DNA of 64,000 nt from Andalucia godoyi And28. Its lineage: Eukaryota > Protista > Jakobida. Both the position numbers and the translations under genes were made by a program. Positions 3,432 to 44,010 of the stretch are shown here, in pieces. The number at the start of each line of letters is the position of its first letter. Position 1 is the first letter of the stretch. The notes under the pieces were generated by a model that was not told the origin of the DNA, ran no database searches, and was given only the letters and a program-made list of their open reading frames with translations. The stretch spans positions 17,534 through 81,533 of the forward strand of contig VRVR01000055.1 of NCBI GenBank assembly GCA_009859145.1, written 5' to 3'.

Positions 3432-3464
3432 CAGGGAGCTTTTGAAATTTACGTGGGTAGCATC

Positions 3465-3535
3465 AAGCCGGACAAACCAGCGAACGATTGGGAAGGACTT
3501 TTGGGCAATTGGGAATTCTCAGAGGAACCAGGGAG
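3465..3535 (-). repeat. right terminal inverted repeat
   Basis: Reverse complement reads ctccctggttcctctgagaattcccaattgcccaaaagtccttcccaatcgttcgct. Confidence 0.7.
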
Positions 3536-3675
3536 GACTTGTGTTTGTTCTTGTTCTACATGCGTCAACCAACATTCAGCTGCTGGACAAATTTCTTTTC
3601 CGTCATTTGCTCGAATTATACTTCTCTTGCGTAATTTCCAATCTATTTCTTCGACTTCCAAACCTTGTTGTGTCC

Positions 3676-6600: not shown

Positions 6601-7494
6601 ATGACAATCGCTGGACCAGAATGCTTCTTCGATTCCTGGGATTACATGTCGAATTTCATCTTGTCGGTGATAGCTCCTGTGATTGCAGTCTGGCTTGTTG
6701 CGTTCATTTGGCTTGTTGGAGCGCTTCGTTTGCGGCGATCTTCTCTTTCGTCGAAAATCGCATGGTTCGACCGATGCCGCCGTTCTGCCATTTTCTTGTT
6801 CCTCTTTCTTTTCATGTCTGCTGTCTCCGCTATTCTTGCGTCATTGTCGTGCACCGCAGATGTCGGCGACGGCAAGTCGTACCTCATCTTCTATCCAAAT
6901 GAGGGATGTTCGAAAGTTCTGCAAGGGAAATCTTCCGTCCTTCTTGTTGTGTACGTATTCGCAATTCCAGGTGGCCTGTCTTATCTTGTCTGGCGTAGTG
7001 GTGTCTTTTCCAAGAATGCAAAATCGGATACACGCAGCATGTACGTCTACTCGTTGCTTTTTGGTTCGTACCGACATGATAGACGATGGTGGGAGTTTGT
7101 TGTAGTCCTGCGTCGAGTGCTGTTTGTGGCTGCATATGTTACAATCTCTCCTCTCTCTGAGTACCGCACTATGTTGGTTGCATCTGTTTTAGTTGCAGCT
7201 GTGGGTGCTCAAGCCATCGCTACGCCGTACCATCGTTCTGCCGAGAATTCTTTCGAAATCATCTCACTTGGAATCTTGCTTGTCAATCTCGTATGTTCCG
7301 TGCAATCGCAAGTTCTTGCCGTACAGGACATTGATGAAGCGGGTACGCTCGTGTTTCTCATGAACGTCGGGTTTTCAATTGTTGTTATTGCGATGTTGGC
7401 CGTGCACTTTCAACAACGATTGCTGAAGAAGAAAAGATTGAATGGAGATGCGTCGCTTACCGAAAGCTTTCTCGAGCAGAATGGAACACTATAG
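3676..7494 (+). pseudogene. LRR / Cys-rich / multi-TM receptor-like protein, copy 1, split by two homopolymer frameshifts (pseudogene, switchable allele or sequencing error)
   Basis: ORFs 3442-4332 (from ATG 3676, signal peptide), 4323-5609 (10 plant-type LxLxxNxLxGxIP repeats) and 5617-7494 (Cys-rich plus ~9 hydrophobic segments) are collinear with intact paralog 51334-55227. Frame changes fall in C6 (4295-4300) and G5 (5587-5591). Confidence 0.8.
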
Positions 7495-11636: not shown

Positions 11637-12938
11637 CTATTGAGAAAACAGCGAAAATTCTCCAGCATCATCAGACTGACGAGTAGAGGCAGAAACTGGG
11701 CGTATTGCGTACCTTTCAGAGTACACAGTGTCGTTGTGCATTTCGAAAACCGTTGGGTCTCGAAGAATGGGAGGGGAAATGGTAGTGAATCCCTCGGCAG
11801 TTAGTATTTTTTGCATCCTCGTCAAATCATTTGTGGGAGTTTCAAAGAAACGAAATCCTTGTTTTTTCCAGAACTCCAACGTTGCATTTGTTGCAATTGC
11901 TTCAATTTCCACTTCTGCTTCGGATGACAGAATCTTCAGAACTCGGAATACGTGCCACACTGCATTTTTGTACAACTTCTTACCGATTCCCCGTTTCCGA
12001 TGACACTTGTCAACTAACAAATGATCGATTTTGATGGTAAGTTCTCGCTTCACATTCTTCTCTCCTTCTGGAATTGGAAGCATCTTCATACTGTAGGAAA
12101 ATAAGCAAAATCCAACCACATTCTTGCTTTCATCTCGATACACAAGGGTGTCCATCTCATTATCAACATTTCTGTACTGAGTGGGAATGTCGTTCGACAC
12201 ACTTTCGAGAGGCCGTTTGTTTCTTTCGTTTCTTTCATCCAACCACTTCTGAATATTATCACGATACTGTTCAAAGTCCGCATCGCTTTTCGACAAGGCT
12301 TTGATTTGTCTAATTTCATCCTGAAAAACGTTATCATCAATTGATGGATCGAGATCGTAAAATCCGCGCTCATCCCGCGTGGTCGGAAGAATCACTGAGC
12401 GTTTAAGAAGCTCCCTGTATTCCCAAAAAGAGTGCTGCTGCGACAAAAGTACTTCTATTCCGAAAGTACTACAGAAATTTAGGTTCCCGGTGGTCAATGA
12501 TACTTGCGGGCGATTCGAGGAAACATCAGCAATGTTCATTTCCAATTCAACAGGAGCCGACAGGTCAACTTTGTGCAAGTCAGACAACAGGTCTATCCAG
12601 TGGTCAAAGAGCGATCCTTGATTCCTGAGCAAGATCTGGTTTGTGTCAATGAACACACGAAAAAGTTCACAAACTGTGACGACGAAAACACCAGGTAGGC
12701 GTCTGCTTTCATCTGGGTAGCCGAATATTGTACGTTTAACTTTCCCGTTCGAAAAGGAGACTGCTAGACCAGCGAGCTCAAAATTCAAGGCAAAAAACTG
12801 GTCTCCCAAAATTTCGAGCACGAGGCCGAAATGCTGACAGACGTATTTGACGGTGTCGTCAAGGGTTTCCGGAACACACAATGAAAACCTGCATTTGTCA
12901 GAAAACCGGCGAAAGGATTGGAACTTTGACGAAGACAT
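11637..12938 (-). CDS. protein with C-terminal GNAT acetyltransferase domain (433 aa)
   Basis: GNAT motif A (IDHLLVDKCHRKRGIGKKL) and motif B-like ATNATLEFWKKQGF; N-terminal ~270 aa unassigned. Confidence 0.8.
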   Translation of the reverse strand: MSSSKFQSFRRFSDKCRFSLCVPETLDDTVKYVCQHFGLVLEILGDQFFALNFELAGLAVSFSNGKVKRTIFGYPDESRRLPGVFVVTVCELFRVFIDTNQILLRNQGSLFDHWIDLLSDLHKVDLSAPVELEMNIADVSSNRPQVSLTTGNLNFCSTFGIEVLLSQQHSFWEYRELLKRSVILPTTRDERGFYDLDPSIDDNVFQDEIRQIKALSKSDADFEQYRDNIQKWLDERNERNKRPLESVSNDIPTQYRNVDNEMDTLVYRDESKNVVGFCLFSYSMKMLPIPEGEKNVKRELTIKIDHLLVDKCHRKRGIGKKLYKNAVWHVFRVLKILSSEAEVEIEAIATNATLEFWKKQGFRFFETPTNDLTRMQKILTAEGFTTISPPILRDPTVFEMHNDTVYSERYAIRPVSASTRQSDDAGEFSLFSQ

Positions 12939-13658: not shown

Positions 13659-14039
13659 ATGGCGGCGGTCTTCGCTGAAAGCATTCTGTTTGCAAACTTA
13701 GAAACAGCAGATGAAACGCTCTTCATTGTAGAGTATTGGGAGAAAAAGAGAATTTATGATTCGACACGAAAAAACAACAAAGGAAATCTGCAACGCCGAG
13801 CAAGCGAATGGACACGAGTTCGATCCGATACTTGTCGCACGAAACCTCTTGACTATGAATTTCGAAAATCAACTGTGGGCGACGAACCGGTAGTCGATGA
13901 ATCAGTGGGACATAATCCTTGCTTTGCGGTTGACGACGCTGCTTCTTGGGAGCTTGCGTGGAGACAAATTAATTACTTGGAACTGCAAATTTCCATCCAG
14001 CATTCCAAGATGAAAGACTCGGACAGCATTTTTAAGTGA
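13659..14039 (+). CDS. possible small hypothetical protein
   Basis: 126-codon ATG ORF filling an intergenic gap and converging on the next gene; no motif. Confidence 0.3.
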   Translation: MAAVFAESILFANLETADETLFIVEYWEKKRIYDSTRKNNKGNLQRRASEWTRVRSDTCRTKPLDYEFRKSTVGDEPVVDESVGHNPCFAVDDAASWELAWRQINYLELQISIQHSKMKDSDSIFK

Positions 14040-14682
14040 ACTTCTTTGACGTGGTCCCCATATTCCTGTGACAATTGAATTTTCTACTATACCAGTCATC
14101 GTTTGGTACGTAGTGTAGCAATTTCCTGAAGCCAGATTCCACAAAAACAGCGCGTGCGCTATTGTCATACACCCCTACTTCACGCAATGCTTCTTCCTTC
14201 ATTTCGGCTGTGATATTTGCTAGACCAGGTAGAGTCGGCTCATTTAACCGGAACGACTCTTTCCATTTAGACTCGGCCTTTCTGTAATCTTCCAAGAGGG
14301 CCACTGAAAATTTGTCTTTGAAAGATCTTAATACTAGCGTCTGGCCAAGAATACTCACAGGAGTCGCAGGAGATACGAATTGCTCAGCATTTCCTTTAAG
14401 AGCTGTAATGGACAGTCCTGGCCGTGCATTTTCGCAAGCGTATTGCAGAGTCACCTTGAACCTGCCTTCCGCTTCTGACCTGAGCAGTTTCTGAGCGTAC
14501 ATCAAATACTTGTTGTGAAGTGAATTTCGCACACCAGAAAACTTGTTCAAACGGTCAAGTTCTTCAAGCAGGATAACGTCCGTGTGGAGACAAAGGGCAA
14601 AACCGATACATATGCCTGTTACTCCAGTCAGAGCGCATTGCACAAAAGGAGATGAAAGCTTACCAAGTATGCTCTGCCACAT
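14032..14682 (-). CDS. hypothetical protein with one N-terminal hydrophobic/TM segment (~216 aa)
   Basis: ORF 14032-14712, ATG at 14682; hydrophobic segment FVQCALTGVTGICIGFALCL; divergent from the nucleotidyltransferase across ~224 bp. Confidence 0.6.
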   Translation of the reverse strand: MWQSILGKLSSPFVQCALTGVTGICIGFALCLHTDVILLEELDRLNKFSGVRNSLHNKYLMYAQKLLRSEAEGRFKVTLQYACENARPGLSITALKGNAEQFVSPATPVSILGQTLVLRSFKDKFSVALLEDYRKAESKWKESFRLNEPTLPGLANITAEMKEEALREVGVYDNSARAVFVESGFRKLLHYVPNDDWYSRKFNCHRNMGTTSKKFT

Positions 14683-14906
14683 AATGTTCCATTTGAAAGC
14701 AGAGAACAGCACACGCTTTTCGAAAGAACCGCTGAAAAGGTTATCCCAAGACCCAAGTTTTTCACGAGGAAGCAGGCTGGTCTGGATTCAATTGATGACA
14801 AACTCGGGCAGTCTTGCATTCATCAGCCATCGAAAACTCTGCATGAGATCAAATTCCGAATCCCTTTTCTTTCTTTTTGTTTTATGTTGAAAAGCAGAAG
14901 CGCACC

Positions 14907-15890
14907 ATGGGTTCAATCAACGGACGACTGCAAGACCTCATTGCCTCTCTCGAGCTCAGAGAAGACGAGAGAGCGAAAGCAGTATCTCGTCATACGAAGA
15001 TTCGCGAGGAAGTTCTTCTTCGTAATGCCGTTTTACCTTGCAAACTTGCATTTCTGACGGGGTCGTATGAACGGCGAACGTGTATCCGACCTCTCCACGA
15101 CATTGATCTTTTTGCAGTTGTTGATACCGATCGTTTCAATCTGAAAAGAGTCACTGCGCGAGAATTGTTGGAACTGATGAGCCGTGTTATTCGTGACGCA
15201 TATCCCACGTCTCGTATTCGTATCCAGTGGCATTCTGTGAATATCAAGTTCGCCGACGGCGTTGCCTTTGACATTCTGCCAGCGTTTGCTAAAGAGGCTC
15301 GCACAAAAGATGGTGAAATTGCTGAGTATTATGTCATTCCGGAAGTCATTGACGAGAATCATCCAGGCAAGTTTATTGCCACCAACCCGAGACTGTTTTC
15401 AAATTGGAGCTCGCAAGTTCACGGTGCTTGCAGCGGAATACTGAGTCCTTTATTTAAGTTGATGAAACTATGGAGACGCTCCATTAGTCGGCGATACAAA
15501 GCTGCAAACCGCATCTTTCCCTTGTATTCCCATTTGCTTGAAGCAACTGTTTACCATTCGGTGGACCCCGAAGCATTGGTGAATCTACAAATTCCCACCG
15601 GTCAGTCATCACTCGGTACTCGTCTCCGATTGTTGTTTTCAAATGTTTTGAGTTTCTTGCAAAGAAAACAAAAATGCTTGGACATTTGTTCGTTGACGTT
15701 TGCTGGCGGTCCGACATTTCGTCCTTTCGACGAGCATCTCACGGATTCTACTCGTGCAGAGGTAATCATGGAGCTTAAGAACGTTTTACATGTACTTGAT
15801 TCGTGGTTGTTGAAAGAAGCAAAGAAGACTACGCCAACAGACGAGACATGGAATGCTTACTGCGCGCTGTTTGGTATACAATCCAATTGA
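14907..15890 (+). CDS. cGAS/DncV-like nucleotidyltransferase (CD-NTase / SMODS, OAS-related), 327 aa
   Basis: FLTGSYERRTCIRPLHDIDLF supplies GS plus DxD (15060-15107); QWHSVNIKF; the third acidic residue is in FDILPAF (15270); also YVIPE...FIATNP, LFKLMKLWRR and SHLLEATVY. The catalytic triad is complete and the gene is intronless. Confidence 0.88.
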   Translation: MGSINGRLQDLIASLELREDERAKAVSRHTKIREEVLLRNAVLPCKLAFLTGSYERRTCIRPLHDIDLFAVVDTDRFNLKRVTARELLELMSRVIRDAYPTSRIRIQWHSVNIKFADGVAFDILPAFAKEARTKDGEIAEYYVIPEVIDENHPGKFIATNPRLFSNWSSQVHGACSGILSPLFKLMKLWRRSISRRYKAANRIFPLYSHLLEATVYHSVDPEALVNLQIPTGQSSLGTRLRLLFSNVLSFLQRKQKCLDICSLTFAGGPTFRPFDEHLTDSTRAEVIMELKNVLHVLDSWLLKEAKKTTPTDETWNAYCALFGIQSN

Positions 15891-16618
15891 GCACAAAGCT
15901 GGTGATGTTGCTGAATCGCAGGCGCATAGCATATTCAAAATCCCACTCTGTCTTGTAACCGTAAATAGAGCTGGACCCTTTTCAACCGCTCAGCTCTTCA
16001 GGACGGTGAAGTACTCACTCTTTCTATGACATACGTTCAGGTATTCTTTCGCAATTCACGTTCTTCCTTTCCAAAGTCATCCTCGACGAGAGCCCTTTCG
16101 ATCCAACGTACCCAAACCAGTTGTTTCACCAGTCGATGAATCTTGGAAAAGCGATCCGCAGAAACGGGCACTCCTTTGCGTGTGTTTGTTCCTCGAACCA
16201 GGTTAAGGATACTTCATGGAATGCAAATGTCAGAGGTGTCCAGATTTTGACGGAAAAGCATCACTGCAAGAAGATGTGCAACACCATTCGAGTGTATGTG
16301 CAGCTGTGCGACAAGGTTGGGAAAGAGACGAAAACATGGGACCCATTGCGAAGCCGATAAACCTAAGTTTTTCATGGACCGTCTTTTCGGACAGCCAGAC
16401 ATGTTATTGCCAGGATTGGTCGTCACACTGTTTATGCATGCCTTTGGGAAAGAGGGGATGTTAACTTGCACTGCGGACGACGGATTTTTTGGGATGTCGA
16501 TCTTCAATGACAGTTGTGACTCGGAATGAACCAAGAGAATGCACTCGATGTTCTGCGACAACCATTTCATTGTCTGCGAATCAGATATCGCAACATTTTG
16601 GGACTCAGCGATTCGCCT

Positions 16619-19600
16619 TTAACTTTTGGTTACACTACCGAAAGCTGTCTTGATAATCACCAGGGTATCGCGGTAGAAATTCCGAATTTCGATGACAGTC
16701 GGGTCCGTTGCCCCCAGCTGTATCGTGGCCTGGTTTAACAACGTAAGCAGCTCACCAGCTCCTTCATGTGGGCGTATCTCCACGAGCTGTCGAATCGCGT
16801 TGAATCTTCTTCTAAAAACTCGAAGTTCAGTTGAGTTTGCATCCACAGACGCCAGTCTCTTTTGAATTGGAACATAGGAATCTGTATCTTCCCTCTGTAA
16901 TTTCAAAATACGAGGTGGCGAGGATAGCTGACGACAAAGATCGTAAATTCCATCACTTTGCGTGATTGTGCCTAATATCTTGAGATCATTGGACAATTCT
17001 GTGCACTCTTTCACAGCGTCTGAAAGCCAACCAAGTTTGATCAAACATCCGATCAAAAAAGCACGGCATTGGAGGAACTCACTTTTCGATGCATCAGGGC
17101 TATCGTGCAGACACAATGACCTACGGATTCCACATACGGACATTGCTTCATGATAATTTCCCTTTTCTACGAGAACTTGACCAACTCTCCGTCGGTGTGA
17201 CAATACCACAGAATCATCTACGTCGGACCGACTCTTTTCGAAGTCAAGTATAGAATTGAATTCTCGTAAGCCACTCTCGAAGGCATTCAACCGGATGAGG
17301 CAAAAACAATAATAGAGTCGAGGAGTCACAATTTCCACTTTAGTAAATCCCGATTGGAACTTCTTATGTACTTCAGTCAATGACTGGAACACAATGACGG
17401 CATCTTCATATTTTCCAAGTTCATACAGCCAAGTCGCCATATTATGGCGAATCCATAGCATGGAACGACTCTCCTCTCCCGCAATACGTCCGTAATCTAG
17501 TAAGAGTCTCTCATACATTTGGACACATTTAAGAAGTTTGGCGGTGTCTTTGAGCTTGAAGAAACAGCGTGCCTGTCCGTTGAGAGCAATTAATTTGCCT
17601 TCGACATCATTTCTGGCTGTTGCAATCACCATCGCAATTTGATACTGTTCAAGAGCTGCGTCAACGTAATCGTTGTCGAACAGTTCGGAAGCAAACCAGT
17701 GAGAGAGAGACAGTGTAACATGAGAAGTTGCACCAAAAACAGACGACCACTCTCGTGACATCTTACGTAGCGATTCAAATGCTCTTTCTCGTTCATTTCC
17801 CAGTGCTATACTTAGTAGCAAGCGTTCAGTTTGAATAAGCAAATGAAACGCATGATCATCTGAAGGCCACAGTTTTTCAACATCCGTAACGAGAGCGGTA
17901 CACCATTTGTCAGCCTCCTTCATTCTATCGTTGTGCACTAGCGAACGAAACATTCGATACCTGAGCAAAAGTATATAACCAACCACGGTGTCACTCAGTG
18001 TTGATAACGTCGAAATCGAAGGCAACACACTCTCGAACAAGCCGTGGAGCAAGTTCAATCTCTCACATCGCTTTAATCCATTCGAAATCCGCAAACACAA
18101 TTGCCAAAATTCCGAAGAGGCCTCTCCCCAACAAGCTGCAGCAATCGCAAGTGACGCTTCACGGAAGACTTCTGAACCGCCATAATCCGTTCCATCGTAG
18201 ATGTGAACTTGCGAAACACCGACGCTTGCTTTGCGAAGATCAGAAACGATATCCAAAATCCACGGTCGGATATCGGGATCGTTATTGAACATCTTCACCA
18301 ACAGAGGGTACAAAACGTCCCGTACAAAAGAAGAGAAGACTGGAGGCACACCAGAGTTGCATACCGAGTCCAGCCAGTCCTTGTCTTGAAGATCCAAGTT
18401 ACTGTAGACTTCCCTGACTGCCGGAATATTGTTCGGATGAAAAAGAATGCTCATCAAAATGCCAATCGAAAAAACATCTGATGCTGGCAGCAAATTCCTC
18501 ACGTCATGCGAAGTTCCATGCACAATTTGCTCGGGACTTCGAAAACCCGGCGTGCCTCCAAATACGGATCGATGACTCCGTGAGGTGTTTCCAGACACGG
18601 AAACTTGAGATCCAATCCCAAGCTCGTCTTCTTGAAATTTGTATGACATTCCAAAATCTATGAGTGCAACTACATACGATTTAACCAGTGCTGAACCACT
18701 GGTAACATCCGGAAATGAAGGCGCTACCGGGCGACCATCCGCGTCCAGATGACACTCTCGCAAAACCAAAATATTCGACGGCTTCAAATCTAAATGCAAA
18801 CACTTCATCTTATGCATATGGTGAATTGCAAAGAGGATTTGCAGCATTATATGTCGACATACTAAGAGCATTACTTGCGGTTCCCGTTCCCATCTTGATT
18901 TCCAATCGGAAGACTCGAGCAAATCATGAAGCGATCCCAAGGAAGAGTACTGTGAGAAAACCGCCCCATCTCTGGCAAACAATACGGGTGCAATGTTTGC
19001 ATGGCCGTCAAGTTCTGCCCAAATGTCTCTCTCTCGCGTGCGTGCATTCACATGAGACGACAATTTGCAAGCAAAAAACTTCGTAGTAATTTCGGTTGAC
19101 AAATTTGTCGAATCAATACGAACAAACTCGACCATGTATACTGCACCATATCCACCGACTCCGATCAGAGCGTGCACTTTGAGAAGCTTGCATTTCGGGT
19201 CGTCATGTGCAACCATGCTGTCGCACAGAGAGCGCATTTTTTCATGAGAATAAAGCAGCGGAGGTCTTCTTCGACAGGAAATCTTCAGAAATCGGTGGGA
19301 GTATGCGTGATGCAGCAATAACGCGGTAAAGCAAGCGCCAAGATCTGAAGCATATACACATATCCCATCTCCACCGTCTGCTACCGTGGACAACATAAGG
19401 CAGTGAACACGTGCGGACTCTTCCATCTCATACGGCGAGTGATGATTCGAGGCTTCAGCATTGCTCCCGAGATTGGCTCTTGTAATGTGAAAAGGAACTT
19501 CTGGTGAATCTTCTCTCATTTCAAACTCACCATTCACGACGAGAGGGACACTGACGTCTTCAACTCCTTCATGTCGGTCACGGCACAATTGATTGTACAA

Positions 19601-20146
19601 GAGAAACCTAATCTTTCCCAATGGATGCATTGCACTCGACGCATCCAATTGCAATTGATCAGTGGACACCGCACTGCTTGTCACGAAGAGTAGCACCGGG
19701 TTGTGTATGCTCACCTTGCGTCCAGCAGACAACTGTGCTGTCACAGCTACTGGCAAGTCGGAAAAATCATCTGGCGCCAAGAAAACAGTCCTCCAACTAA
19801 TGCCCCTTCCCCACATCACTTCCGATGCCCAGTTACGTGCCTCACGTTGCAGTATTTCTTCTGAAGGCGAAGTATACACAATCCACATGCGGACAAGCAG
19901 GTTTGCAGTTTGCAGGAATTGGGGGCCTCCACTCCTCTTGGAATAAGAAAGGGAAGCATAGCTGAAAGGATCGGTGATGTAGAGCGCACATATCACAGGA
20001 TATACGTCCGTAAATCCTTCGGTACCCCAATCGGAAGGACACGCAACCTGACGGAGACCATGAGAACCGCCAACTTCAAGCGAATTATCGCTTCCGGCAG
20101 CGGACACAGTTGCTCCCCACGACTCTCCAGATTCAGAGAGAGCCAT
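16619..20146 (-). CDS. Ser/Thr protein kinase with C-terminal TPR-like helical repeats (1175 aa)
   Basis: Kinase motifs GVGGYGAV, FACK, HLDLKPSN, DFG, GTPGFRSPE and SDVFSIG. The C-terminus has kinesin-light-chain-type TPR patterns (GEESRSMLWIRHNMATWLYELGKYEDA). Confidence 0.9.
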   Translation of the reverse strand: MALSESGESWGATVSAAGSDNSLEVGGSHGLRQVACPSDWGTEGFTDVYPVICALYITDPFSYASLSYSKRSGGPQFLQTANLLVRMWIVYTSPSEEILQREARNWASEVMWGRGISWRTVFLAPDDFSDLPVAVTAQLSAGRKVSIHNPVLLFVTSSAVSTDQLQLDASSAMHPLGKIRFLLYNQLCRDRHEGVEDVSVPLVVNGEFEMREDSPEVPFHITRANLGSNAEASNHHSPYEMEESARVHCLMLSTVADGGDGICVYASDLGACFTALLLHHAYSHRFLKISCRRRPPLLYSHEKMRSLCDSMVAHDDPKCKLLKVHALIGVGGYGAVYMVEFVRIDSTNLSTEITTKFFACKLSSHVNARTRERDIWAELDGHANIAPVLFARDGAVFSQYSSLGSLHDLLESSDWKSRWEREPQVMLLVCRHIMLQILFAIHHMHKMKCLHLDLKPSNILVLRECHLDADGRPVAPSFPDVTSGSALVKSYVVALIDFGMSYKFQEDELGIGSQVSVSGNTSRSHRSVFGGTPGFRSPEQIVHGTSHDVRNLLPASDVFSIGILMSILFHPNNIPAVREVYSNLDLQDKDWLDSVCNSGVPPVFSSFVRDVLYPLLVKMFNNDPDIRPWILDIVSDLRKASVGVSQVHIYDGTDYGGSEVFREASLAIAAACWGEASSEFWQLCLRISNGLKRCERLNLLHGLFESVLPSISTLSTLSDTVVGYILLLRYRMFRSLVHNDRMKEADKWCTALVTDVEKLWPSDDHAFHLLIQTERLLLSIALGNERERAFESLRKMSREWSSVFGATSHVTLSLSHWFASELFDNDYVDAALEQYQIAMVIATARNDVEGKLIALNGQARCFFKLKDTAKLLKCVQMYERLLLDYGRIAGEESRSMLWIRHNMATWLYELGKYEDAVIVFQSLTEVHKKFQSGFTKVEIVTPRLYYCFCLIRLNAFESGLREFNSILDFEKSRSDVDDSVVLSHRRRVGQVLVEKGNYHEAMSVCGIRRSLCLHDSPDASKSEFLQCRAFLIGCLIKLGWLSDAVKECTELSNDLKILGTITQSDGIYDLCRQLSSPPRILKLQREDTDSYVPIQKRLASVDANSTELRVFRRRFNAIRQLVEIRPHEGAGELLTLLNQATIQLGATDPTVIEIRNFYRDTLVIIKTAFGSVTKS

Positions 20147-20724
20147 GCCGATTGTTCTCTTTCACAAATGCTTATTAATGTCGCAGAAAAATGAAGCAAC
20201 ACAGGTGCAAAAACGAAATAACTACACTATCTGGCACGTGAAGTAGCGTAAAGGCGGGGCCGCGGGGAAGCAGAGCTGTTGCCCTGTTTTTTGCAGCCTG
20301 CTTGGCAGATCCCGCCTCCTACAAATATCCTCCGTTTTGCCATTGCGAAAACTCATTGCCGCAGGCAAGGTGTGTGAGCTCGCCGATCGGAGCGCACGCT
20401 TGAAAAATGAAATGTTTGCTCGTAACGCCGTCATTCCCAATTTTCAAAGATCAGGGCTTTTGTGAACCTTCCGTGATCCGTCCGCCGTCGGCACAGTTGA
20501 AGGTTGAAGCCACTTTTGTGTAGCCCATCAAACAGAACGGTGCTGTGCTGGCAGAATCGGCTCTTTTTGCTTCCTTGACTCCGGAAAGCCCTCAGCAACC
20601 CAGACCTTCAATCTCCTTCGTCCTTCATCGCCGTTCGTCTCGGTCTAACCACTTTCGTTCTCCTTTATTTTTCTCCCTTTCCCTTTTCTTTTTCAGTCTC
20701 CGTTCTTAACATCCCATCAGCATC

Positions 20725-23700
20725 ATGAACGGCTCTGGTAGGCAGGCCACGAACTCCCGTGTTGACTTCCGAGTGCTAAAGTTTCCCCCTGTCGCTGTTC
20801 GCGTTTGCGGTACTTCTATTTCCGAGGGCGATGGGCTCGTTGGTCCGTTGCGGTCGCTGTCAGTCGATAGTTCTTCCACTTCGGAAACGTGTCGTCAATC
20901 AGTTCGAAAAGACGATGCACATCCAGATGTGGATTCCGATTGGATGTTAGTCGATGTGACAGATGATGAGTGGAAACTGCAATGGAAATCCAATTTTGTC
21001 GAAGGAGGTCGATCGCTTTCCAGGTTTGCCCAGAAAATTGCGAAGAAGCTCACAGAGGATGAAGAGCTGTTTTGCGTAACTGTTGTGGGTTCTCCTCAAA
21101 TGAACACATTTGTCTGTGACAAGGCCCGCTCTTTGGATAGGGCTCAGACATGTATCCAAGAATCCTTGGAAGCTGTTCTGACAGTCGTTTTGTTGATTGC
21201 TGATCCAAACGATCGTGTGTCTGATTTGATACTTGACGAGACATATGCCGATGTTTCGAAGCACGTTCCTTCTTCGGTACCTGGTAATCCTGCAGATTAC
21301 CGTGCTGGATGGTCATCGTACATCCATAACCACTCGATTGTAATTGACACTCCGTCCGGGAAGTCAATGTCAGCGACCGACAACCGCCCCGTCCTTGTTT
21401 CCGCAAGTATTTTGGACGTTCAATGTTTGAGTGACACTGCCGGATCATCTGCGAGATGTTCTTGGGAATGGGAAAATGTTGGTGAATCTCGTGTGGATTC
21501 TTTATCATTCTCGCGTTCTACCTCCACAGACAGTGATGTCATTGATGAACTGTTTGCAACTGTTCATTGTGGGTTGCCAGGATTGTTCGGAACTCATTCG
21601 GAACGATTTCCTACGGGATTGTCATTCTTTTTTGGAGGATCTTGTGACACTTCAAGCGACCAGCAGAAAGCGATGGGTCTGCGTTTCAGTGGCGATGGTT
21701 GTTCGTTTGAGGTGGGATCTTTTATGATCATAACCTCTTCATCTTTGAATCGTGTTGTGAATCTGCACAATGGTTTTTCCGTGACTGTTGACTGGAATCA
21801 TCCACCAGGCTCGAAAGGCACGTTTCTGTCATCGACGGAAGCAACAGTGCAAAACTTGCTGCAGACATTACCGGTTGTTGAAGAAATTCGAAAGCACTCT
21901 TCAAAATTCACCCCTGTCTCTGGATTGAACATTAAGATGAGCGGTTATCAGGTTTTCGCTTCTGGACTTGTACAGCTACGATTCAGATTTGGTGATGCAC
22001 TGCTGCTCATTTTGTCGGTAGGACAAGCTGACACCGTGGTTCGATCCGTCATGCTTGAACTTCGACAAAAGATGCAGTCGTCGGATAAAGCCGGCAGTTA
22101 CCGCACCGTGCATGTCCTGGGCTGTCGTTCAATTCAATGGTCTTCGCAGCATGGTTTATTCATTCTTCCTCCGAAGAGCAATGGCCTGGAACATTCCACG
22201 GTTTCTTTCTCGTGTTCTTCTGTTCCACTCCAGAATCCATTCTTCCCGACAGATTCTTATGGCAGACTGTGTGTGGGTGCACACACCGAACCCGGTGACA
22301 ATTTATCCGCTGTATTGGATGGCTTCTGTGATTTTGCAAATGATGACAGCGGAGGTTTGGTTTCCTTTATCTCCCCCAATGGTGACCAGCTGATGAGCTA
22401 CAAGGGCAAATTACAGAATGGAAAAGTGCTAGACCATTCACAGGTGCTATGTACGAATTATCAAAATGGTCGACTGTTTTCTGGCGTCTTTGTCAACGAG
22501 GTTCCACACGGGATAGTGGAAATGCGAGACTTGACGAATCTTTCGTCTGATGGCTTGCGATTCGAGAATGGCAGAGATTGCGGTTCTGTGCCTCTTAGAG
22601 ACCAGTTTCACAGTTTCCTGGAGAACATTAAGCAAAAGTTTAGTACCGACCCGCACATCCATCATTTGGACAAGCCGTCTTTTGTTCTTCGCAATGGCGA
22701 AGCATTCTGCGTCTTTTCGCACGAGTGTCGTGTTTCTTCAACTGCTTCAAATATTTTCCGTGGTTGGACGCTTTCAGATGGAGTCGTTGCTGTCAAAATT
22801 TTTTCTGAAGCGCAGGGTCATAAGGATGCGACTGTGAATGGGCGCCTCCCCATCAGTTCAGACCCTGATAGTGGTATCGTTCGGTACATCCACACAGATT
22901 GCGTGCGGTCCTCTGAATGTTCTTTGCGTTCATCGGACGGGAAGCCTGCCTCTGCACTTGTTCTTGAATTGTGTGAGCCAGGTGATGCCGAGACTCACAT
23001 TGTAGCATTGCAGAACGAGATTTCTTCCGAAAAGTTCTTGTCGCATATTTTCGGACTTCTTCGAGGGTTGCATGGCATCCACAACTTGAGTATCGTCCAC
23101 CGAGACATCAAGCCGTCTAATGTTTTGTTTTCATCAGGACCTCTTGCTCGTCTTCGACTAGCCGATTTTGGTATTTCTGCCTTTTTACCGAGTGGCAAGA
23201 CAAGCAGGCTGCAAACAGCCCTCGATGGTGTCGGTACTGCTGGATGGTGTGCTCCTGAACAAGTATCCGATACGCTGCTCCACACAACACGGACGGATGT
23301 ATTCAGTTTTGGATGGACAATGCTCTTTCTGTGCATTGATCATGAACGTTGTTCAAAGTATCCCCGTCTCTGCAAGAACAGTTCTTTTTTGGCTCTGTCT
23401 CCATCCGATCGAATGGAGTTATTCCGAACTTCGCAGGGTCTTGAGGCATACCGAAAGGCTTTATCCGACGATATTGAAGGAATCAAGGCTGGTCGGATAC
23501 CTCTTCACATGGAGTCTGCACATGCTCAAAGCACCATGCAATACTTCTTCGCAGATCTCTTCAGTAGAATGGTGGATGTTGATCCCAAGAAACGGGATAC
23601 TTCAGCGTCATTGTTGCGACATCCTCTGTTCTGGTCTTGTACTGAAAGTTTGAATTTGGTGAAAGATGTTGTTGACGTCGTGCATGATTTGGCAATTACC

Positions 23701-24159
23701 CAACCACGCGCTCCCACGGGTTCAGAAGTCTTGGATGTGCTTTTGCAAAGGAGTTCCGCCGGCAAGAATTCCATTCTATCCTCTTCCTCCTTTGATGCCT
23801 GGGGTCCAAATTCCAATATGCTTATTCGTGGACAGTTGATAGATTCTGTTTTTGATGTTAGAGCCAAGAAGTTGCCGTCCACAGCCAACCTGACGATGTA
23901 TGCGGTCATGAAATTCTACAGAAACATTCTCACCCATTCAGATGCTTCGTCGGCGCTCTTCCTCCTCGGAACAAACAATGACTCTTTTCTGACGTACCGT
24001 TTGCTGTCTGCCGCGAAGAATGGATTGTTGTTTCATGACATTTGGAAGATATGTTTAGAAGCTTTCCGCAGAACATCGAAAAAGGATCGTACATCTCTGT
24101 CCAGAGAAGATGTTAACTCTCTGTGTATCTTAGAAAAATGCTTTGGAACACTAATGTAG
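20725..24159 (+). CDS. soluble IRE1/RNase L-family kinase + KEN (HEPN) ribonuclease with MORN-like repeats (1144 aa)
   Basis: Kinase motifs VAVK, IVRY, LELC, IVHRDIKPSN, DFG, GTAGWCAPE; kinase-KEN junction LLRHPLFWS (~23611-23637); RNase motif KFYRNILTHSD (23911-23943); MORN-like YKGKLQNG / FSGVFVNEVPHG (~22390-22530). No signal peptide or TM segment. Confidence 0.85.
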   Translation: MNGSGRQATNSRVDFRVLKFPPVAVRVCGTSISEGDGLVGPLRSLSVDSSSTSETCRQSVRKDDAHPDVDSDWMLVDVTDDEWKLQWKSNFVEGGRSLSRFAQKIAKKLTEDEELFCVTVVGSPQMNTFVCDKARSLDRAQTCIQESLEAVLTVVLLIADPNDRVSDLILDETYADVSKHVPSSVPGNPADYRAGWSSYIHNHSIVIDTPSGKSMSATDNRPVLVSASILDVQCLSDTAGSSARCSWEWENVGESRVDSLSFSRSTSTDSDVIDELFATVHCGLPGLFGTHSERFPTGLSFFFGGSCDTSSDQQKAMGLRFSGDGCSFEVGSFMIITSSSLNRVVNLHNGFSVTVDWNHPPGSKGTFLSSTEATVQNLLQTLPVVEEIRKHSSKFTPVSGLNIKMSGYQVFASGLVQLRFRFGDALLLILSVGQADTVVRSVMLELRQKMQSSDKAGSYRTVHVLGCRSIQWSSQHGLFILPPKSNGLEHSTVSFSCSSVPLQNPFFPTDSYGRLCVGAHTEPGDNLSAVLDGFCDFANDDSGGLVSFISPNGDQLMSYKGKLQNGKVLDHSQVLCTNYQNGRLFSGVFVNEVPHGIVEMRDLTNLSSDGLRFENGRDCGSVPLRDQFHSFLENIKQKFSTDPHIHHLDKPSFVLRNGEAFCVFSHECRVSSTASNIFRGWTLSDGVVAVKIFSEAQGHKDATVNGRLPISSDPDSGIVRYIHTDCVRSSECSLRSSDGKPASALVLELCEPGDAETHIVALQNEISSEKFLSHIFGLLRGLHGIHNLSIVHRDIKPSNVLFSSGPLARLRLADFGISAFLPSGKTSRLQTALDGVGTAGWCAPEQVSDTLLHTTRTDVFSFGWTMLFLCIDHERCSKYPRLCKNSSFLALSPSDRMELFRTSQGLEAYRKALSDDIEGIKAGRIPLHMESAHAQSTMQYFFADLFSRMVDVDPKKRDTSASLLRHPLFWSCTESLNLVKDVVDVVHDLAITQPRAPTGSEVLDVLLQRSSAGKNSILSSSSFDAWGPNSNMLIRGQLIDSVFDVRAKKLPSTANLTMYAVMKFYRNILTHSDASSALFLLGTNNDSFLTYRLLSAAKNGLLFHDIWKICLEAFRRTSKKDRTSLSREDVNSLCILEKCFGTLM

Positions 24160-25934: not shown

Positions 25935-27998
25935 TCAAACCGGGTTGTTTTGATCACCAGCAGTTTCAAAGAACTCTCGCACGCGTCTAACCAGCCGATC
26001 ACTCGCGCTGCTCCGGTTCTCCAGCTCAAACAGACTGGGGAACTCGTGATGCAGTCGTTGCAAAAAGGAACGCAGAGGTCGCCGCTCCTCCGTGTCCAGC
26101 GCAGGAATCGGAAGAGAAGGATTCAGCACATCGTTCAAAATGCCTGATCGAATTTCAAACAGTTCATCTTTGTTGTGCAGCCGAGTATGTGATTCTAGAG
26201 TTGATTCCTTCAAATAGATGGCCACCGGCGGCAGCCACGAGAGAATATCACCGATTGCCAGGTACACCGTCGTGAGCACAGCTTGCTGCAGACACACTTG
26301 GAGCCGTTGTCCATCGGACAGAACTACCAACGACGCCACTGCATCCAGCCAATCGGGAGAGAAGGCCGCGTGGTAGTGAAACTCTTTTTTGTCACGCTTC
26401 TGGATAAAGGACGCACCGCCCCAGTCAATCAAGCATATGGGAAACTGAAAGTCGCTTTGCATCTCCTCTAACAGCACCACATTTTGCGGACAAATGTCCA
26501 TGTGGTAGATGCCACGGTCATCGCACTGCAAGACAATGCTCATCAATTGTTGAAGAAGTTCCGTGCAAAAAGCGAGGGAGCGGTTCGGATAGCACGATGC
26601 AAGCGGCAACGGCACTCCTACAGGCGCAGTGCACAGAATAGCTCCTTGATCGGACTGTTCAGAATGCAAGAGAGTGGGGACCCAGAAGCGATGACGGCCC
26701 CAGTCGATTCTGGAAAGCTCCTGCAGTGCCCCAAGTTCGGTTGTCCACTCCGCGAGCCTCGATACCGGAAAACACTTCGCAACAATAGAGTTCGTCGCAT
26801 CAAGAGTCCCAGTTGCTAGTTCCACAGCATTCATCTTCCCGATGCCATGGACCGGGGCACGCTGCAGCATTCCAGTCAGCTCCAGTCTCGGTGAAACAGA
26901 GAGTGAGCGCACGATTCCAGAGGACAAGGCAGAAATAACTGGAGGCGGCGTGCCATTCCACCCACACAAGGCATGTGGATCGCTGGACAACAAGAAGCAA
27001 AGCCCCTTCATACCGTCCTCGTGAAGTGCAATGGGTTCAGTTTCCAGCAGTTCATAGTCCCATCCAAACTCGGAATCGAAAATGCGCAAGCACAGAAACA
27101 CAATAAATTTCCGGTTGCACGCAAAGCCCCAACACACACGTCGAGAAATACCGGATTCCTGAACAATGTGCGCAAACCGCTGATACACTTGCTGGGTAGC
27201 CTCGGAGAGCTTTGACTTTTTGGTACCGTCGAGTCGATCGGATCCTTTGAGTTCCCCGGCAATGCTTGCTCCCGAGTACATGGGACACCGAAGAGCGAGA
27301 CGACCGATGCAAAGCAGCAAATCCACCCTTTGGTTCTGTCCGTAGAGGCCACTCCGCGAGAAATCCACGAGATGCATGTCGCCGTGCTTGGAGAGGAATC
27401 GTGTGATGAACAACCGGAACTGGACTTGCAGGAGCGGCTCAGGACAAGAGTCCAAAGGAAGCGTTCCCACCGTCTCGTTCCACATTGCCTGGAAATCCTC
27501 CCAGAACGGGAGATTGGAAGAAATGGAGGGGAAAAGATCGTCAAACGAAGATCTCGTGGCATACAAATTGGTGGTGCCGCTGCGCGACGACGACCCCAAC
27601 GCCAGCAAATCCTGCGACAGCTTGGAGAGGAAATACTTGATATCGGATACCTTCGCCACCTCTTCGGCAGCAAGTCTTCCTTGATGCTCCGCCTCTTTCT
27701 CTTGTCTCTCACGATCAAGGGCTATTTGTGTCGACTCTTTCTCCTGTCTTTCTCTCTCTTTCTCAAGGCGTTCATGTTCAGCGGCTGCTTCAACAATTTC
27801 CTTCGCTTTCCTTTCATGTTCAGCGACTGCTTCAGCAATTTCCTTCGCCTTCCTTTCATGTTCAGCGGATGCTTCAGCAATTTCCTTCGCCTTCAAAGCG
27901 TGTTCAGCGACTGCTTCAGCAGCCTCCTTTGCCTGCTTCAACTGCTCGAATTGCTTCAGCAGCTCCTGAATCTTGTCATTTGGATCGGACGAACTCAT
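25935..27998 (-). CDS. Crinkler/RHS-type (CR) effector: coiled-coil header + PD-(D/E)xK nuclease + atypical kinase, copy 1 (687 aa)
   Basis: EK-rich header; nuclease VDLL...GELK...QVYQR; kinase VAK, TELGAL, HMDICPQN, DWG. Confidence 0.8.
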   Translation of the reverse strand: MSSSDPNDKIQELLKQFEQLKQAKEAAEAVAEHALKAKEIAEASAEHERKAKEIAEAVAEHERKAKEIVEAAAEHERLEKERERQEKESTQIALDRERQEKEAEHQGRLAAEEVAKVSDIKYFLSKLSQDLLALGSSSRSGTTNLYATRSSFDDLFPSISSNLPFWEDFQAMWNETVGTLPLDSCPEPLLQVQFRLFITRFLSKHGDMHLVDFSRSGLYGQNQRVDLLLCIGRLALRCPMYSGASIAGELKGSDRLDGTKKSKLSEATQQVYQRFAHIVQESGISRRVCWGFACNRKFIVFLCLRIFDSEFGWDYELLETEPIALHEDGMKGLCFLLSSDPHALCGWNGTPPPVISALSSGIVRSLSVSPRLELTGMLQRAPVHGIGKMNAVELATGTLDATNSIVAKCFPVSRLAEWTTELGALQELSRIDWGRHRFWVPTLLHSEQSDQGAILCTAPVGVPLPLASCYPNRSLAFCTELLQQLMSIVLQCDDRGIYHMDICPQNVVLLEEMQSDFQFPICLIDWGGASFIQKRDKKEFHYHAAFSPDWLDAVASLVVLSDGQRLQVCLQQAVLTTVYLAIGDILSWLPPVAIYLKESTLESHTRLHNKDELFEIRSGILNDVLNPSLPIPALDTEERRPLRSFLQRLHHEFPSLFELENRSSASDRLVRRVREFFETAGDQNNPV
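27771..27935 (-). repeat. 42-bp (14-aa) tandem repeat, ~4 units, in the CR copy 1 header
   Basis: ttcatgttcagc recurs at 27771, 27813 and 27855, degenerate at ~27897; it encodes (AEAVAEHERKAKEI)n. Confidence 0.9.
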
Positions 27999-28219: not shown

Positions 28220-28376
28220 TCCAGTACTCATGGGAAAATCACGAGTTCGGGGATTTTCGATCTTACCAGATTTTTCTCCGAATTCCCTCCTTTCCCGTCT
28301 GAATTCTCTTTTTCCCGTTTCTTCTTCTTTCTTCTTTTTCTTATTCCAATTCCTTCTTTCATTCATCACCCCAGCC

Positions 28377-30278
28377 ATGAGTTCGTCCGGTTCAGATGAT
28401 GTGGTTCAGAAGCTGCTCAGGCAAATCGAGCAGTTAAATCGTGAAAATGAGAGAGAGCGGCAAGAAAAGGAAATCGCGCAGGCTGCCGTTGAACACGAGC
28501 GCCTGGAAAAAGAGAAGGAACGACAAGAGAAAGAAGCGGAACATCAAAAAAGACTTGTTGCCGAAGAACATGCGAAGAAATCAGATGTGCAACTCTTTCT
28601 CTCCAAATTGTCGCAGGATTTACTGGCTATTGCGTCATCGTCGCGCAGCTACACCACAAACTTGTCTGCCACAGACGCCTCGTTTGAAGATTTGTTTCCG
28701 TCTCTCAACGACTGTCCGAACTGGAACGATTTTCAGGCGCTTTGGCAAGCAACAGTGGAGAAGCTGCCTTCCGAGTCATGTCCCGAGCCACTGTTGCAGG
28801 AGCAATTCCGTGTGCTCATTACGCGATTCCTTTCGCAGCACGGCGACATGCACCTGGTGGATTTCTCGCGCAGTGGATTGTATGGATTGAACCAAAAGGT
28901 GGACTTGCTATTCTGCCGGGGCCGACAAGCCCAGCGCCTGCCCACGTACTTTGAATCGTGCCTCGTCGGCGAACTCAAAGCGTCCGGCCAGGTCGAGGAT
29001 GCCGACGATTCGAAACTTTCCGACGCCGTCCTGCAGGTGTACCAACGATTCGCACACATTGTTCAAGAATCGGGTGTTCGTCGGCGCGAATGCTGGGGGT
29101 TTGCGTGCAACCGCACGACAATCGTGTTTCTGTCGTTGCGCATTTCTGATTTAGAGTCTGAGTGGGACTACCAGTTGCTACAGACCCCGCCGATGGCGCT
29201 TAAAGATGACGGGTTGAAGGGACTATGCTTCTTGTTGTCCAGTGAATCGCATGCCTTGTGTGCGTGGAATGGCGCAGCGCCACCTGTTGTGTCCACCTTG
29301 TCTTCTGAAATTGTGAGTTCACTGTCCGTTTCACCGAGACTGGAATTGACCGGGATGCTGCAGCGTGCACCCGTTCATGGCATCGGCCAGATGGATGCCG
29401 TGGAACTGGCAACTGCGACTCTTGATGCGACGACCTCTGCTGTTGTCAAGTGCTTTCCGGCATCGAAGAAAGCAGAATGGACGACCGAACGTGGAGCACT
29501 GCAGGAACTCTCGAAAATTGACTGGAGTGATCACCGTTTCTGGGTGCCCACTCTTTTGCGTTCCGAACAGTCTGAGCGTGGCGCCATTCTGTGCACAGCT
29601 CCAGTAGGAGTGCCGTTGCCGCTTGCGTCGTGTTATCTGGGCCGTGCTCTCATTTTCTGTTCAGAACTTCTGCAGCAATTGATGAGCATTGTATTGCAAT
29701 GTCATGACCATGGCGTGCATCACATGGACATCTGTCCGCAGAATGTAGTGTTGCTGGAGGAGGTGCAAACTTCCTTTCTGTTTCCAGTATGTCTGATTGA
29801 CTGGGGTGGCGCATCGTTTATGCAAAAGCGTGACAAAAAAGATTTTCACTACCATGCCGCTTTCTCGCCGGATTGGTTGGACCCCATGCGTTCGCTGGCG
29901 AATCTGACGGATGGACAACGGCTCCAAGTGTGTTTGCAGCAGACTGTGCTCACAGTGTTGTACCTGGCAATTGGTGACGTCCTCTCGTGGCTGCCGCCGG
30001 TGGCCATTTTCCTGGATGAATCAACCCATCGAGAAAAGCATACTCGGATGCACAACAAATCCGCCTTGTTTCGAATCCGAGCGCGTATTCTGAACGATGT
30101 GCTGAACCCATCCCTTTCGATCCCTGCGCTGGACACGGATGATCGACGGCCTGTGCGTTCCTTTTTGCAAAGACTGCACCATGAGTTCCCGAGTCTATTT
30201 GAGTTGAAGAAACGAAGCAGCGCGAATGCTTTGCTCGTTGGACGCATTCCAGAGATTTGTGCGACGTTTCGAGGATGA
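28377..30278 (+). CDS. CR effector (coiled-coil + nuclease + kinase), copy 2 (633 aa)
   Basis: ATG at 28377 (MSSSGSDD) matches the paralog N-termini; VDLLFC...GELK...QVYQR, VVK, HMDICPQN and DWG are intact. Confidence 0.85.
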   Translation: MSSSGSDDVVQKLLRQIEQLNRENERERQEKEIAQAAVEHERLEKEKERQEKEAEHQKRLVAEEHAKKSDVQLFLSKLSQDLLAIASSSRSYTTNLSATDASFEDLFPSLNDCPNWNDFQALWQATVEKLPSESCPEPLLQEQFRVLITRFLSQHGDMHLVDFSRSGLYGLNQKVDLLFCRGRQAQRLPTYFESCLVGELKASGQVEDADDSKLSDAVLQVYQRFAHIVQESGVRRRECWGFACNRTTIVFLSLRISDLESEWDYQLLQTPPMALKDDGLKGLCFLLSSESHALCAWNGAAPPVVSTLSSEIVSSLSVSPRLELTGMLQRAPVHGIGQMDAVELATATLDATTSAVVKCFPASKKAEWTTERGALQELSKIDWSDHRFWVPTLLRSEQSERGAILCTAPVGVPLPLASCYLGRALIFCSELLQQLMSIVLQCHDHGVHHMDICPQNVVLLEEVQTSFLFPVCLIDWGGASFMQKRDKKDFHYHAAFSPDWLDPMRSLANLTDGQRLQVCLQQTVLTVLYLAIGDVLSWLPPVAIFLDESTHREKHTRMHNKSALFRIRARILNDVLNPSLSIPALDTDDRRPVRSFLQRLHHEFPSLFELKKRSSANALLVGRIPEICATFRG

Positions 30279-36117: not shown

Positions 36118-36277
36118 CATGGTCAGCTAGTCGTGGTGTGACCCTGGAATTCTGAGAGTTGGCTTTGTGGACGGTTGATTCCATTCATTGACGGCCATCT
36201 TTGTTTGAATCATTTCATCCTGCACAGGCAAACTTTGGCAACAGTGTATCCAATTAAGTCCGTGGCATCCTTTCCCT

Positions 36278-43869: not shown

Positions 43870-44010
43870 ATGTTGAAATATACCCTAGAACAGAGAGAGA
43901 GGGTTTGTAGATTAACGAAGATGGAGATGACATGGCCAAAGTAGACAAAATATTGAAAGTCAATCCGAAGACTGCGTCTGCATGGATTCAAAAGTACCAG
44001 CGCGCTGTTT
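43870..44010 (+). pseudogene. transposase-type helix-turn-helix relic
   Basis: MLKYTLEQRERVCRL, a 1-nt frameshift, then EDGDDMAKVDKILKVNPKTASAWIQKY, resembling the N-terminal HTH of Tc1/IS630-type transposases. Confidence 0.5.

Follow-up and report, generated by a model that had tools for sequence, protein, structure and literature searches.

Does a protist genome hold a clustered pathway in which a nucleotidyltransferase makes a second messenger that switches on an RNase, or do such genes lie side by side without acting together? The question is raised by a stretch of 64,000 nucleotides from Andalucia godoyi And28 (contig VRVR01000055.1, positions 17,534 to 81,533), here called the window, in which a gene for a nucleotidyltransferase of CD-NTase type lies close to the genes for two kinase proteins, one with a TPR domain (kinase-TPR) and one with an IRE1-type kinase followed by a probable KEN-type RNase tail (kinase-KEN). 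In an earlier note on this DNA the three genes were read as the synthase, the controlling kinase and the RNase L-like effector of one immune pathway. Our analysis indicates that the observation is largely right and that the parts are interesting in themselves, and that the pathway joining them is a proposal built on adjacency. The reading to which we lean, by no means firmly, is that of separate stress or immune-type genes in one variable neighbourhood, not of a demonstrated three-part pathway.

A catalytically complete CD-NTase

The catalytic core of the CD-NTase is matched by several independent models. Pfam SMODS (PF18144) scores 59.3 bits against a cut-off of 26.5 bits (E 7.3e-16) and covers profile positions 3-162 of 164. 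The PADLOC model Cyclase ('oligonucleotide cyclase') matches with an E-value of 3.3e-31, and the NCBIfam model CBASS_cyclase_b (NF041117), built for cyclases of the cyclic oligonucleotide-based antiphage signalling system (CBASS), with 2.8e-31, the latter over residues 10-197 only. The corresponding score of 109 bits lies below the 200-bit equivalog cut-off of NF041117, so that the protein falls short of equivalog status among the bacterial CBASS cyclases. In the PDB it is closest to 6p8u and 6p82 (1.6e-11), nucleotidyltransferases of 300-302 residues, which we take to be CdnD from a HORMA/TRIP13 CBASS system. The segment FLTGSYxRxT..PLxDIDxF aligns nearly residue for residue with these two proteins, with GS and DxD in register, and G52-S53, D65, D67 and D122 are all present and occupy invariant columns in a multiple alignment. 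Judged by its residues, the gene encodes a genuine, catalytically complete CD-NTase, and the earlier call of an intact enzyme of the Pol-beta fold is solid, given the SMODS score, the CBASS cyclase models at about 3e-31 and the full catalytic set.

The label 'OAS-like' that was attached to the enzyme is, on the other hand, wrong in detail. The top Pfam domain is SMODS, NTP_transf_2 is matched too, and OAS1_C was not found in the Pfam scan. Because SMODS and NTP_transf_2 are the only domains detected and the best relatives are CdnD-like cyclases, the protein is to be regarded as CdnD-like and not as OAS-type. Its C-terminus gave no match in the sensor and family searches (Pfam, PADLOC, NCBIfam and PDB). 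The gene is a monocistronic eukaryotic gene amid genes of eukaryotic type, with a host-like GC content and a codon usage that matches that of the host genes, and since the codon usage agrees, the CD-NTase is not a contamination.

Bacterial relatives and the eSMODS superfamily

In 185,579 prokaryotic genomes, 287 relatives of the CD-NTase were found by a pattern scan, the best of which are 26-32% identical over residues 1-190. Two of the bacterial operons were opened (L011 and L002), and both contain the series HORMA-HORMA-cyclase-SAVED/endonuclease, with TRIP13 also present in L011; they are thus type III CBASS operons. In L002 a second, shorter cyclase-like open reading frame (ORF; L002:8460-9266, PADLOC Cyclase 1.4e-18) follows the SAVED endonuclease. 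The bacterial type III CBASS cyclases have the same GS/DxD/D active site as the protist enzyme and provide its best structural and profile matches. The alignment with them stops, however, at about residue 190-200, and the C-terminal 130 residues of the protist protein are unrelated. Moreover, no HORMA, TRIP13 or SAVED/Cap4/NucC-like partner was detected near the CD-NTase when the four neighbouring proteins of the locus and their orphan regions were searched with PADLOC and Pfam.

Eukaryotic CD-NTases derived from clade D have been described under the name eSMODS in Amoebozoa, choanoflagellates, Ancyromonadida and a sponge (Culbertson & Levin 2023, PMC10732462). According to that description eSMODS have never been characterised (PMC10732462), and in the literature searched we found no later study that gives them a product, a receptor or an effector. 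The CD-NTase resembles them in being encoded by a eukaryote, in having SMODS as its top Pfam domain together with NTP_transf_2, in its length (about 320-330 residues) and in its affinity to clade D-type cyclases. In pairwise comparisons, four eSMODS from the supplement of PMC10732462 were 25-29% identical to the CD-NTase, compared with about 30% for the bacterial cyclases, and the eSMODS of Cunea sp. (P001167) aligns with it from end to end (27% over 324 residues). The enzyme is missing from the sequence files of that study, and in contrast to the published eSMODS its genomic context is visible here. By these pairwise comparisons the CD-NTase would correspond best to the eSMODS superfamily, although it may also represent an independent acquisition. 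What the locus adds is an eSMODS-type CD-NTase in its genomic setting, intact and host-adapted, with every bacterial partner missing nearby.

The sole close relative found in a word-indexed search is encoded at L001:345-1100, on a contig of 1151 bp (GC 0.50) from Joint Genome Institute (JGI) metagenome 3300042922. It is 49% identical over 251 residues, uninterrupted, and stops at codon 252, and no neighbouring gene is present on so short a contig. The CD-NTase extends some 75 residues beyond the end of this relative, which is therefore either a short version of the protein or encoded by a truncated gene.

A soluble kinase of the IRE1 family

In the kinase-KEN protein, no window of 19 residues among the 1144 exceeds the threshold for hydrophobicity, and the ORF opens at the first ATG past a stop codon. 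From these two observations it follows that the protein is soluble, unlike IRE1, as the earlier note had claimed. None of the elements that place IRE1 in a membrane, that is, a signal peptide, a lumenal sensor domain or a transmembrane (TM) segment, was found in it.

The kinase domain is of IRE1 type. IRE1 chains fill the first 16 places among its PDB matches (1e-16 to 2.5e-15), ahead of OSR1, and the match extends through the segment DPxKRxTxxxxLRHPLFW. Pfam Pkinase (1.4e-25) matches from profile position 72 onward. The motifs VAVK (688-691), IVRY, HRD (792-794), DFG (814-816) and GTxGWxAPE are kept, the glycine-rich loop is replaced by SSTASN, and no alphaC glutamate aligns. AlphaFold2 (AF2) gives a confident kinase core without an alphaC helix. 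Because the glycine-rich loop and the alphaC glutamate are missing, the domain is likely, as far as its residues tell, to be a weak kinase or a pseudokinase.

The region in front of the kinase is an orphan. Neither ankyrin repeats nor any other Pfam family was detected in residues 1-660 even at E<=1, and residues 1-651 gave no match in NCBIfam, PADLOC or PDB beyond one to CARF_HEPN (E 0.042, 10.8 bits), which was judged to be due to chance. An AF2 model of the N-terminal 660 residues, computed from the single sequence, was unusable (predicted local distance difference test, pLDDT, 33). No internal repeats in the N-termini of the two kinase proteins, and no similarity between them, rose above shuffled sequences. 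Should the kinase-KEN protein be regulated by a ligand, residues 1-651 are the candidate sensor.

No orthologue of the protein was found: a word-indexed search with the full length was empty, and one with the kinase and tail returned generic kinases plus two fish 'IRE1-like' proteins only. Scans of viral and metagenome contigs for the context of relatives gave nothing useful, the three metagenome loci obtained being plain kinase matches.

A probable KEN/HEPN tail

Does the tail that follows the kinase belong to the KEN family? The segment RHPLFW (residues 965-970) aligns with the junction through which the yeast and human IRE1 kinases in the PDB lead into their KEN domains. For the tail itself a KEN profile was built from four sequences (human IRE1a, yeast Ire1, and human and pig RNase L), each of which had been compared with PDB chains residue by residue. 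With the junction included, hhalign aligned the tail to this profile with a probability of 75.9% (E 2.3e-5, 105 columns). A conserved tryptophan is matched, KFYRNILTH falls in the columns of LLRAMRNKKHH and LLKFIRNLGEH, and DSFLTY in those of DDFVCY, so that R1066, N1067 and H1071 are in register with RNKKHH of IRE1 and RNLGEH of RNase L. The spacing R-x4-H is the catalytic signature of HEPN/KEN domains (PMC3710099). The RNase L motif to which the tail had been compared in the earlier note proved to be correct, since the PDB chains of RNase L read ...DLLKFIRNLGE[H/N]I..., and KFYRNILTH lies in the same hhalign columns. When the first 12 residues, which hold the junction, were removed, the same register still came out on top, with a score of 15.95 compared with 11.4 +/- 1.85 for shuffled sequences (z about 2.5); two of 100 shuffles reached it.

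The alternative is that the protein is simply a soluble kinase or pseudokinase that has diverged and carries a helical extension, in which RNxxxH occurs by chance. In line with this, the Pfam model Ribonuc_2-5A (PF06479) does not match the tail even at E<=1, and phmmer against 1.84 billion representative proteins recovered nothing but the query and a spurious protein with Ig repeats. The AF2 confidence for the tail is low (pLDDT 31-64), the catalytic tyrosine of IRE1 aligns to a lysine, and the score without the junction was equalled by the two shuffles mentioned. Against it, the kinase resembles IRE1 in particular, a family in whose members HP[FL]FW is invariably followed by a KEN domain; the register, which aligns the tryptophan, RNxxxH and D-x-F-x-x-Y, is the same with and without the junction; and the tail is as long as a KEN domain should be, with a predicted structure that is helical throughout. 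With both sides taken together, we regard KEN membership as probable from the alignment, and a chance motif in an unrelated extension as rather improbable.

The KEN RNase proposed earlier is the least secure part of the observation and stands as probable: RNxxxH is in register and the profile alignment is supportive, but neither a Pfam match nor a homologue was obtained in the searches described and the AF2 confidence is low. A Foldseek search with the AF2 model of kinase plus tail gave IRE1 among the top matches, in a ranking that is driven by the kinase.

Comparison with IRE1, RNase L and fish proteins

IRE1 (ERN1/Ire1p) is the closest kinase in the PDB, and VAVK, IVRY, HRD, DFG, G-T-x-G-W-x-A-P-E and HP[FL]FW are common to both proteins. 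In contrast to IRE1, the protist protein has no signal peptide, lumenal domain, TM segment, glycine-rich loop or alphaC glutamate; its tail is too divergent for Pfam, and lysine stands in place of the catalytic tyrosine.

RNase L consists of ankyrin repeats, which bind the messenger 2'-5'-oligoadenylate (2-5A), a pseudokinase and a KEN domain. The kinase-KEN protein is like it in being soluble, with a non-catalytic N-terminus, a degenerate kinase and a tail containing KF-x-RN-x-x-x-H. A nucleotidyltransferase that might, as OAS does for RNase L, make an oligonucleotide messenger is encoded nearby. The protist protein differs from RNase L in lacking ankyrin repeats and in having a kinase that is nearer to IRE1, the list of its 60 best PDB matches containing no RNase L chain, and the synthase differs from OAS in being of SMODS/CdnD type, with no OAS1_C. 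RNase L is reported to have arisen before the common ancestor of the jawed vertebrates (PMC10400998), so that any likeness to it would have come about by convergence from an IRE1 scaffold.

The two fish proteins found with the kinase and tail (P0008 and P0010) are cyprinid 'IRE1-like' proteins. P0008, from Labeo rohita, is another soluble protein with an IRE1-type kinase, joined to a different, immune-type N-terminal module (CARD). Its short tail contains LRHLRNALGH (L-R-N-x-x-G-H) and, like that of the protist protein, receives no KEN call from Pfam. The fish proteins are unrelated to the protist protein outside the kinase (54% identity over 68 residues), have a much shorter tail and belong to animals. 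The kinase-KEN protein represents a new variant, soluble in this case, of the architecture of IRE1 and RNase L, and has a domain of about 650 residues that was seen nowhere else.

The kinase-TPR protein

The third gene encodes a kinase-TPR protein, as had been proposed, and this call is likewise solid (Pfam Pkinase 2.6e-19 and TPR_12 6.3e-8, with TPR_10 also matched). The kinase domain is complete, with a GxGxxG loop (GVGGYGAV), the lysine of FACK, HLDLKPSN and DFG, and because HLD replaces HRD it is a non-RD kinase. The N-terminal 320 residues had no match in Pfam, NCBIfam, PADLOC or PDB. From its architecture, the fusion of a non-RD kinase with TPR would fit a scaffold or a receptor-type signalling kinase.

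The 216-residue membrane neighbour

Within the interval that the earlier note covered lies a further gene that it did not mention. This gene, for a protein of 216 residues, is arranged head-to-head with the CD-NTase gene, the two start codons lying 224 bp apart, and its product has one hydrophobic segment near the N-terminus (ORF residues 22-52). Small membrane proteins are a known class of CBASS effectors, and the 216-residue protein is therefore at least as natural a candidate partner of the CD-NTase as the kinases are. In such a case the locus would hold a minimal pair of a cyclase and a membrane effector, and the kinases would be bystanders. The arrangement as immediate neighbours, the fact that the gene is annotated, the hydrophobic segment and the likeness to the established class of membrane-disrupting small effectors all agree with this. 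On the other hand, the protein has no known homologue and no match in Pfam, PADLOC, NCBIfam or PDB, CBASS effector models included, and although codon usage favours this frame over the other five, the gene has the weakest coding signal among the neighbouring genes. Furthermore, no trace of it was found in the 344 bp upstream of the metagenomic relative of the cyclase (L001), a stretch too short to be decisive. We consider a pair of this kind very unlikely.

Upstream tracts as a possible sign of coupling

The 12-mer TCCCTTTTCTTT occurs about 45 nt before the start codons of both the CD-NTase and the kinase-KEN gene, and was considered as a signal of co-regulation. It was rejected as such, being part of pyrimidine tracts of a kind that stands in front of many unrelated genes of the window: long CT-rich tracts are found some 20-90 nt ahead of the start codons at 14907, 20725, 27998 (- strand), 37186, 46401 and 56730. 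As the tract is generic to many genes of the window, the shared 12-mer is not evidence of coupling. The polypyrimidine tract appears to be a genome-wide 5' feature, that is, a promoter, a 5' untranslated region or possibly a signal resembling a splice acceptor.

The presence of a kinase neighbour as such is unremarkable, because kinase-type genes are common in the window (about six intact ones plus fragments, or roughly one quarter of the genes). It is the KEN-like tail that makes the pairing of the CD-NTase with the kinase-KEN protein notable. No recognisable ligand sensor (ankyrin, SAVED, CARF or STING) was found in either kinase protein with Pfam, PADLOC, NCBIfam and PDB. Proximity is the sole basis for a coupling from synthase through messenger to RNase, and we judge such coupling unlikely.

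Separate genes or one pathway

The absence from the locus of the HORMA, TRIP13 and SAVED partners of type III CBASS cyclases supports the reading of separate genes in one variable neighbourhood, as do the identities of the domains, the end-to-end likeness of the CD-NTase to a published eSMODS, the absence of a sensor in the kinase proteins, the generic nature of the upstream motif, the duplicated and decayed surroundings and the abundance of kinases. On this reading the CD-NTase descends from bacterial cyclases of the CdnD/type III CBASS type and, like its relatives, would most likely condense nucleoside triphosphates, once activated, to a cyclic product of two or three nucleotides; the receptor of this product may be encoded elsewhere. 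From the mechanism of IRE1 and RNase L, the degenerate kinase of the kinase-KEN protein would most likely act as a nucleotide-binding dimerisation module, and the orphan region of about 650 residues would drive the dimerisation that activates the probable KEN/HEPN endoribonuclease.

Three points weigh against this reading. Genes for CD-NTases and for KEN-type proteins are expected to be rare, so that their chance placement two genes apart would be unlikely, an argument that is post hoc, as the pair comes from a scan that sought such pairs. The soluble kinase-KEN protein, with its degenerate kinase and its large unexplained N-terminus, has the architecture expected of a ligand-activated analogue of RNase L. 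Finally, no alternative receptor for the product of the CD-NTase is visible in the 64 kb.

These points lead to the pathway itself, in which the CD-NTase would sense infection and make an oligonucleotide messenger, this messenger would bind to the N-terminus and pseudokinase of the kinase-KEN protein and cause it to dimerise, and its tail would cleave RNA, with the kinase-TPR protein as regulator or sensor. The synthase is catalytically intact by its residues, and the putative effector is a soluble protein in which the kinase motifs are of IRE1 type, the N-lobe is degenerate and RNxxxH lines up with that of RNase L. The two rare gene types are 4.8 kb apart, the kinase genes have a common divergent promoter region, and all three genes are intact amid decaying families. 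Nevertheless, no ankyrin, SAVED, CARF or STING-like sensor was detected in the searches described, the bacterial relatives of the cyclase work through SAVED nucleases and depend on HORMA proteins and TRIP13 for their control, and the membership of the tail in the KEN family is probable rather than certain. In addition, the shared 12-mer is generic and no other signal of co-regulation was seen at the locus, and eukaryotic partners are seldom clustered. The identities of the parts put forward in the earlier note thus mostly hold, whereas the step from synthase to messenger to RNase is unsupported beyond adjacency, and we regard the pathway as improbable. Marginally less probable still is the fuller version, an antiviral axis like that of OAS and RNase L, assembled independently in a protist from a type III CBASS-derived CD-NTase, whose perhaps cyclic oligonucleotide would dimerise an IRE1-derived RNase through its orphan N-terminus and pseudokinase; synthase and effector would still be clustered in the manner of bacterial defence operons, and a kinase-TPR protein that shares the promoter region of the effector would be the regulator. 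The likelihoods expressed here for the various readings are not all mutually exclusive.

If the coupling were true, the locus would represent a second, convergent invention of the logic of OAS and RNase L and a rare case of clustered defence genes in a eukaryote. If the genes are uncoupled, it offers two expressible proteins with which to probe the products of eSMODS and the soluble IRE1 paralogues outside the unfolded-protein response.

Locus layout and genomic setting

The positions of the features are given in Table 1. Those of the CD-NTase, kinase-TPR and kinase-KEN genes agree with the earlier note, and the distance from the stop codon of the nucleotidyltransferase gene to the start of the kinase-KEN gene, put at 4.8 kb, was measured as 4835 bp. 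The head-to-head arrangement of the two kinase genes also holds, with 578 bp between them, within which the promoters of both presumably lie. An exact-sequence look-up showed that all four ORFs of 14032-24159 are gene models on record, in EukProt only.

Table 1. Positions of the genes, domains and motifs at the locus (window coordinates)
Feature	Position	Strand	Basis
Orphan protein, 216 residues, counted from first ATG	14032-14682	-	ORF, EukProt entry
SMODS-type CD-NTase (eSMODS-like), 327 residues	14907-15890	+	ORF, Pfam/PADLOC/NCBIfam/PDB matches
Nucleotidyltransferase core, residues 1-197	14907-15497	+	Profile matches
Catalytic residues G52-S53; D65 and D67; D122	from 15060; 15099-15113; within 15267-15287	+	Alignment
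Kinase-TPR, 1175 residues	16619-20146	-	ORF, Pkinase and TPR_12
Orphan N-terminus of kinase-TPR, 320 residues	within 16619-20146	-	No family match
Non-RD (HLD) Ser/Thr kinase, residues 324-633	18248-19177	-	Pkinase
Helical TPR-containing C-terminal half; TPR_12 match	16622-18229; 17366-17530	-	Pfam
Divergent intergenic region common to both kinase genes, 578 bp	20147-20724		ORF coordinates
Kinase-KEN candidate, 1144 residues	20725-24159	+	ORF, IRE1-type kinase, probable KEN/HEPN tail
Orphan N-terminal region, residues 1-651	20725-22677	+	No recognisable fold or family
IRE1-family kinase domain, residues 652-969	22678-23631	+	PDB and Pfam matches
Probable divergent KEN/HEPN RNase tail, residues 966-1144 (179 residues)	23620-24156	+	hhalign, junction
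HPLFW junction; R1066-N1067-x3-H1071; DSFLTY	23620-23634; 23920-23937; 23980-23997	+	Alignment

The window has a GC content of about 0.47 and is made up of long unbroken ORFs on alternating strands; scans for tRNA and Rfam families in it gave no matches. From this it is an intron-poor, eukaryotic genome. The neighbourhood is fast-evolving and rich in duplicated and decayed families, with leucine-rich repeat (LRR) proteins, kinase-like proteins, a transposase and cysteine-rich proteins of surface type, and none of the four genes at 14032-24159 has a paralogue in the window. The statement that the three genes are single-copy and unbroken among pseudogenised families is accordingly true within the window, where broken copies of the kinase-like, LRR and DDE_3 families are found.

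The kinase-like family, with proteins of 625-690 residues, has four intact copies, at 25935-27998 (-), 28230-30278 (+), 37186-39075 (+) and 56730-58607 (+), which share 55-74% identity, and is lineage-specific. Fragments lie at 35176-36862 and 43993-45362, at least two copies being broken or frameshifted. Three of the four intact copies show a weak, partial match to protein kinases (E 3.5e-6 to 1.4e-3), and at least one copy of the family has an Ala/Glu/Lys repeat at its N-terminus.

LRR proteins with DUF7630 are encoded at 3442-7494 (+), 51334-55242 (-) and 61427-63997 (-). The first of these consists of three ORFs, 54-73% identical to the intact copy of 1302 residues, and as they lie in different frames it is likely to be a pseudogene. 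A DDE_3 transposase is intact at 39346-40575 (-; 409 residues), and a decayed copy in two pieces (38-44% identity) lies near the start of the window, at 1606-2648 (-).

Two genes upstream of the CD-NTase, at 11637-12938 (-), lies the gene for a protein of 433 residues whose C-terminal part is a GNAT acetyltransferase domain (E about 4e-6); the annotated model may differ, since the exact ORF is missing from the protein collection. The two ABCG-type half-transporters at 32481-34517 (-) and 41670-43694 (+) are only about 30% identical to each other. At 46401-50861 (+) a cysteine-rich protein of 1486 residues is encoded, which contains 13 Ephrin_rec_like repeats.

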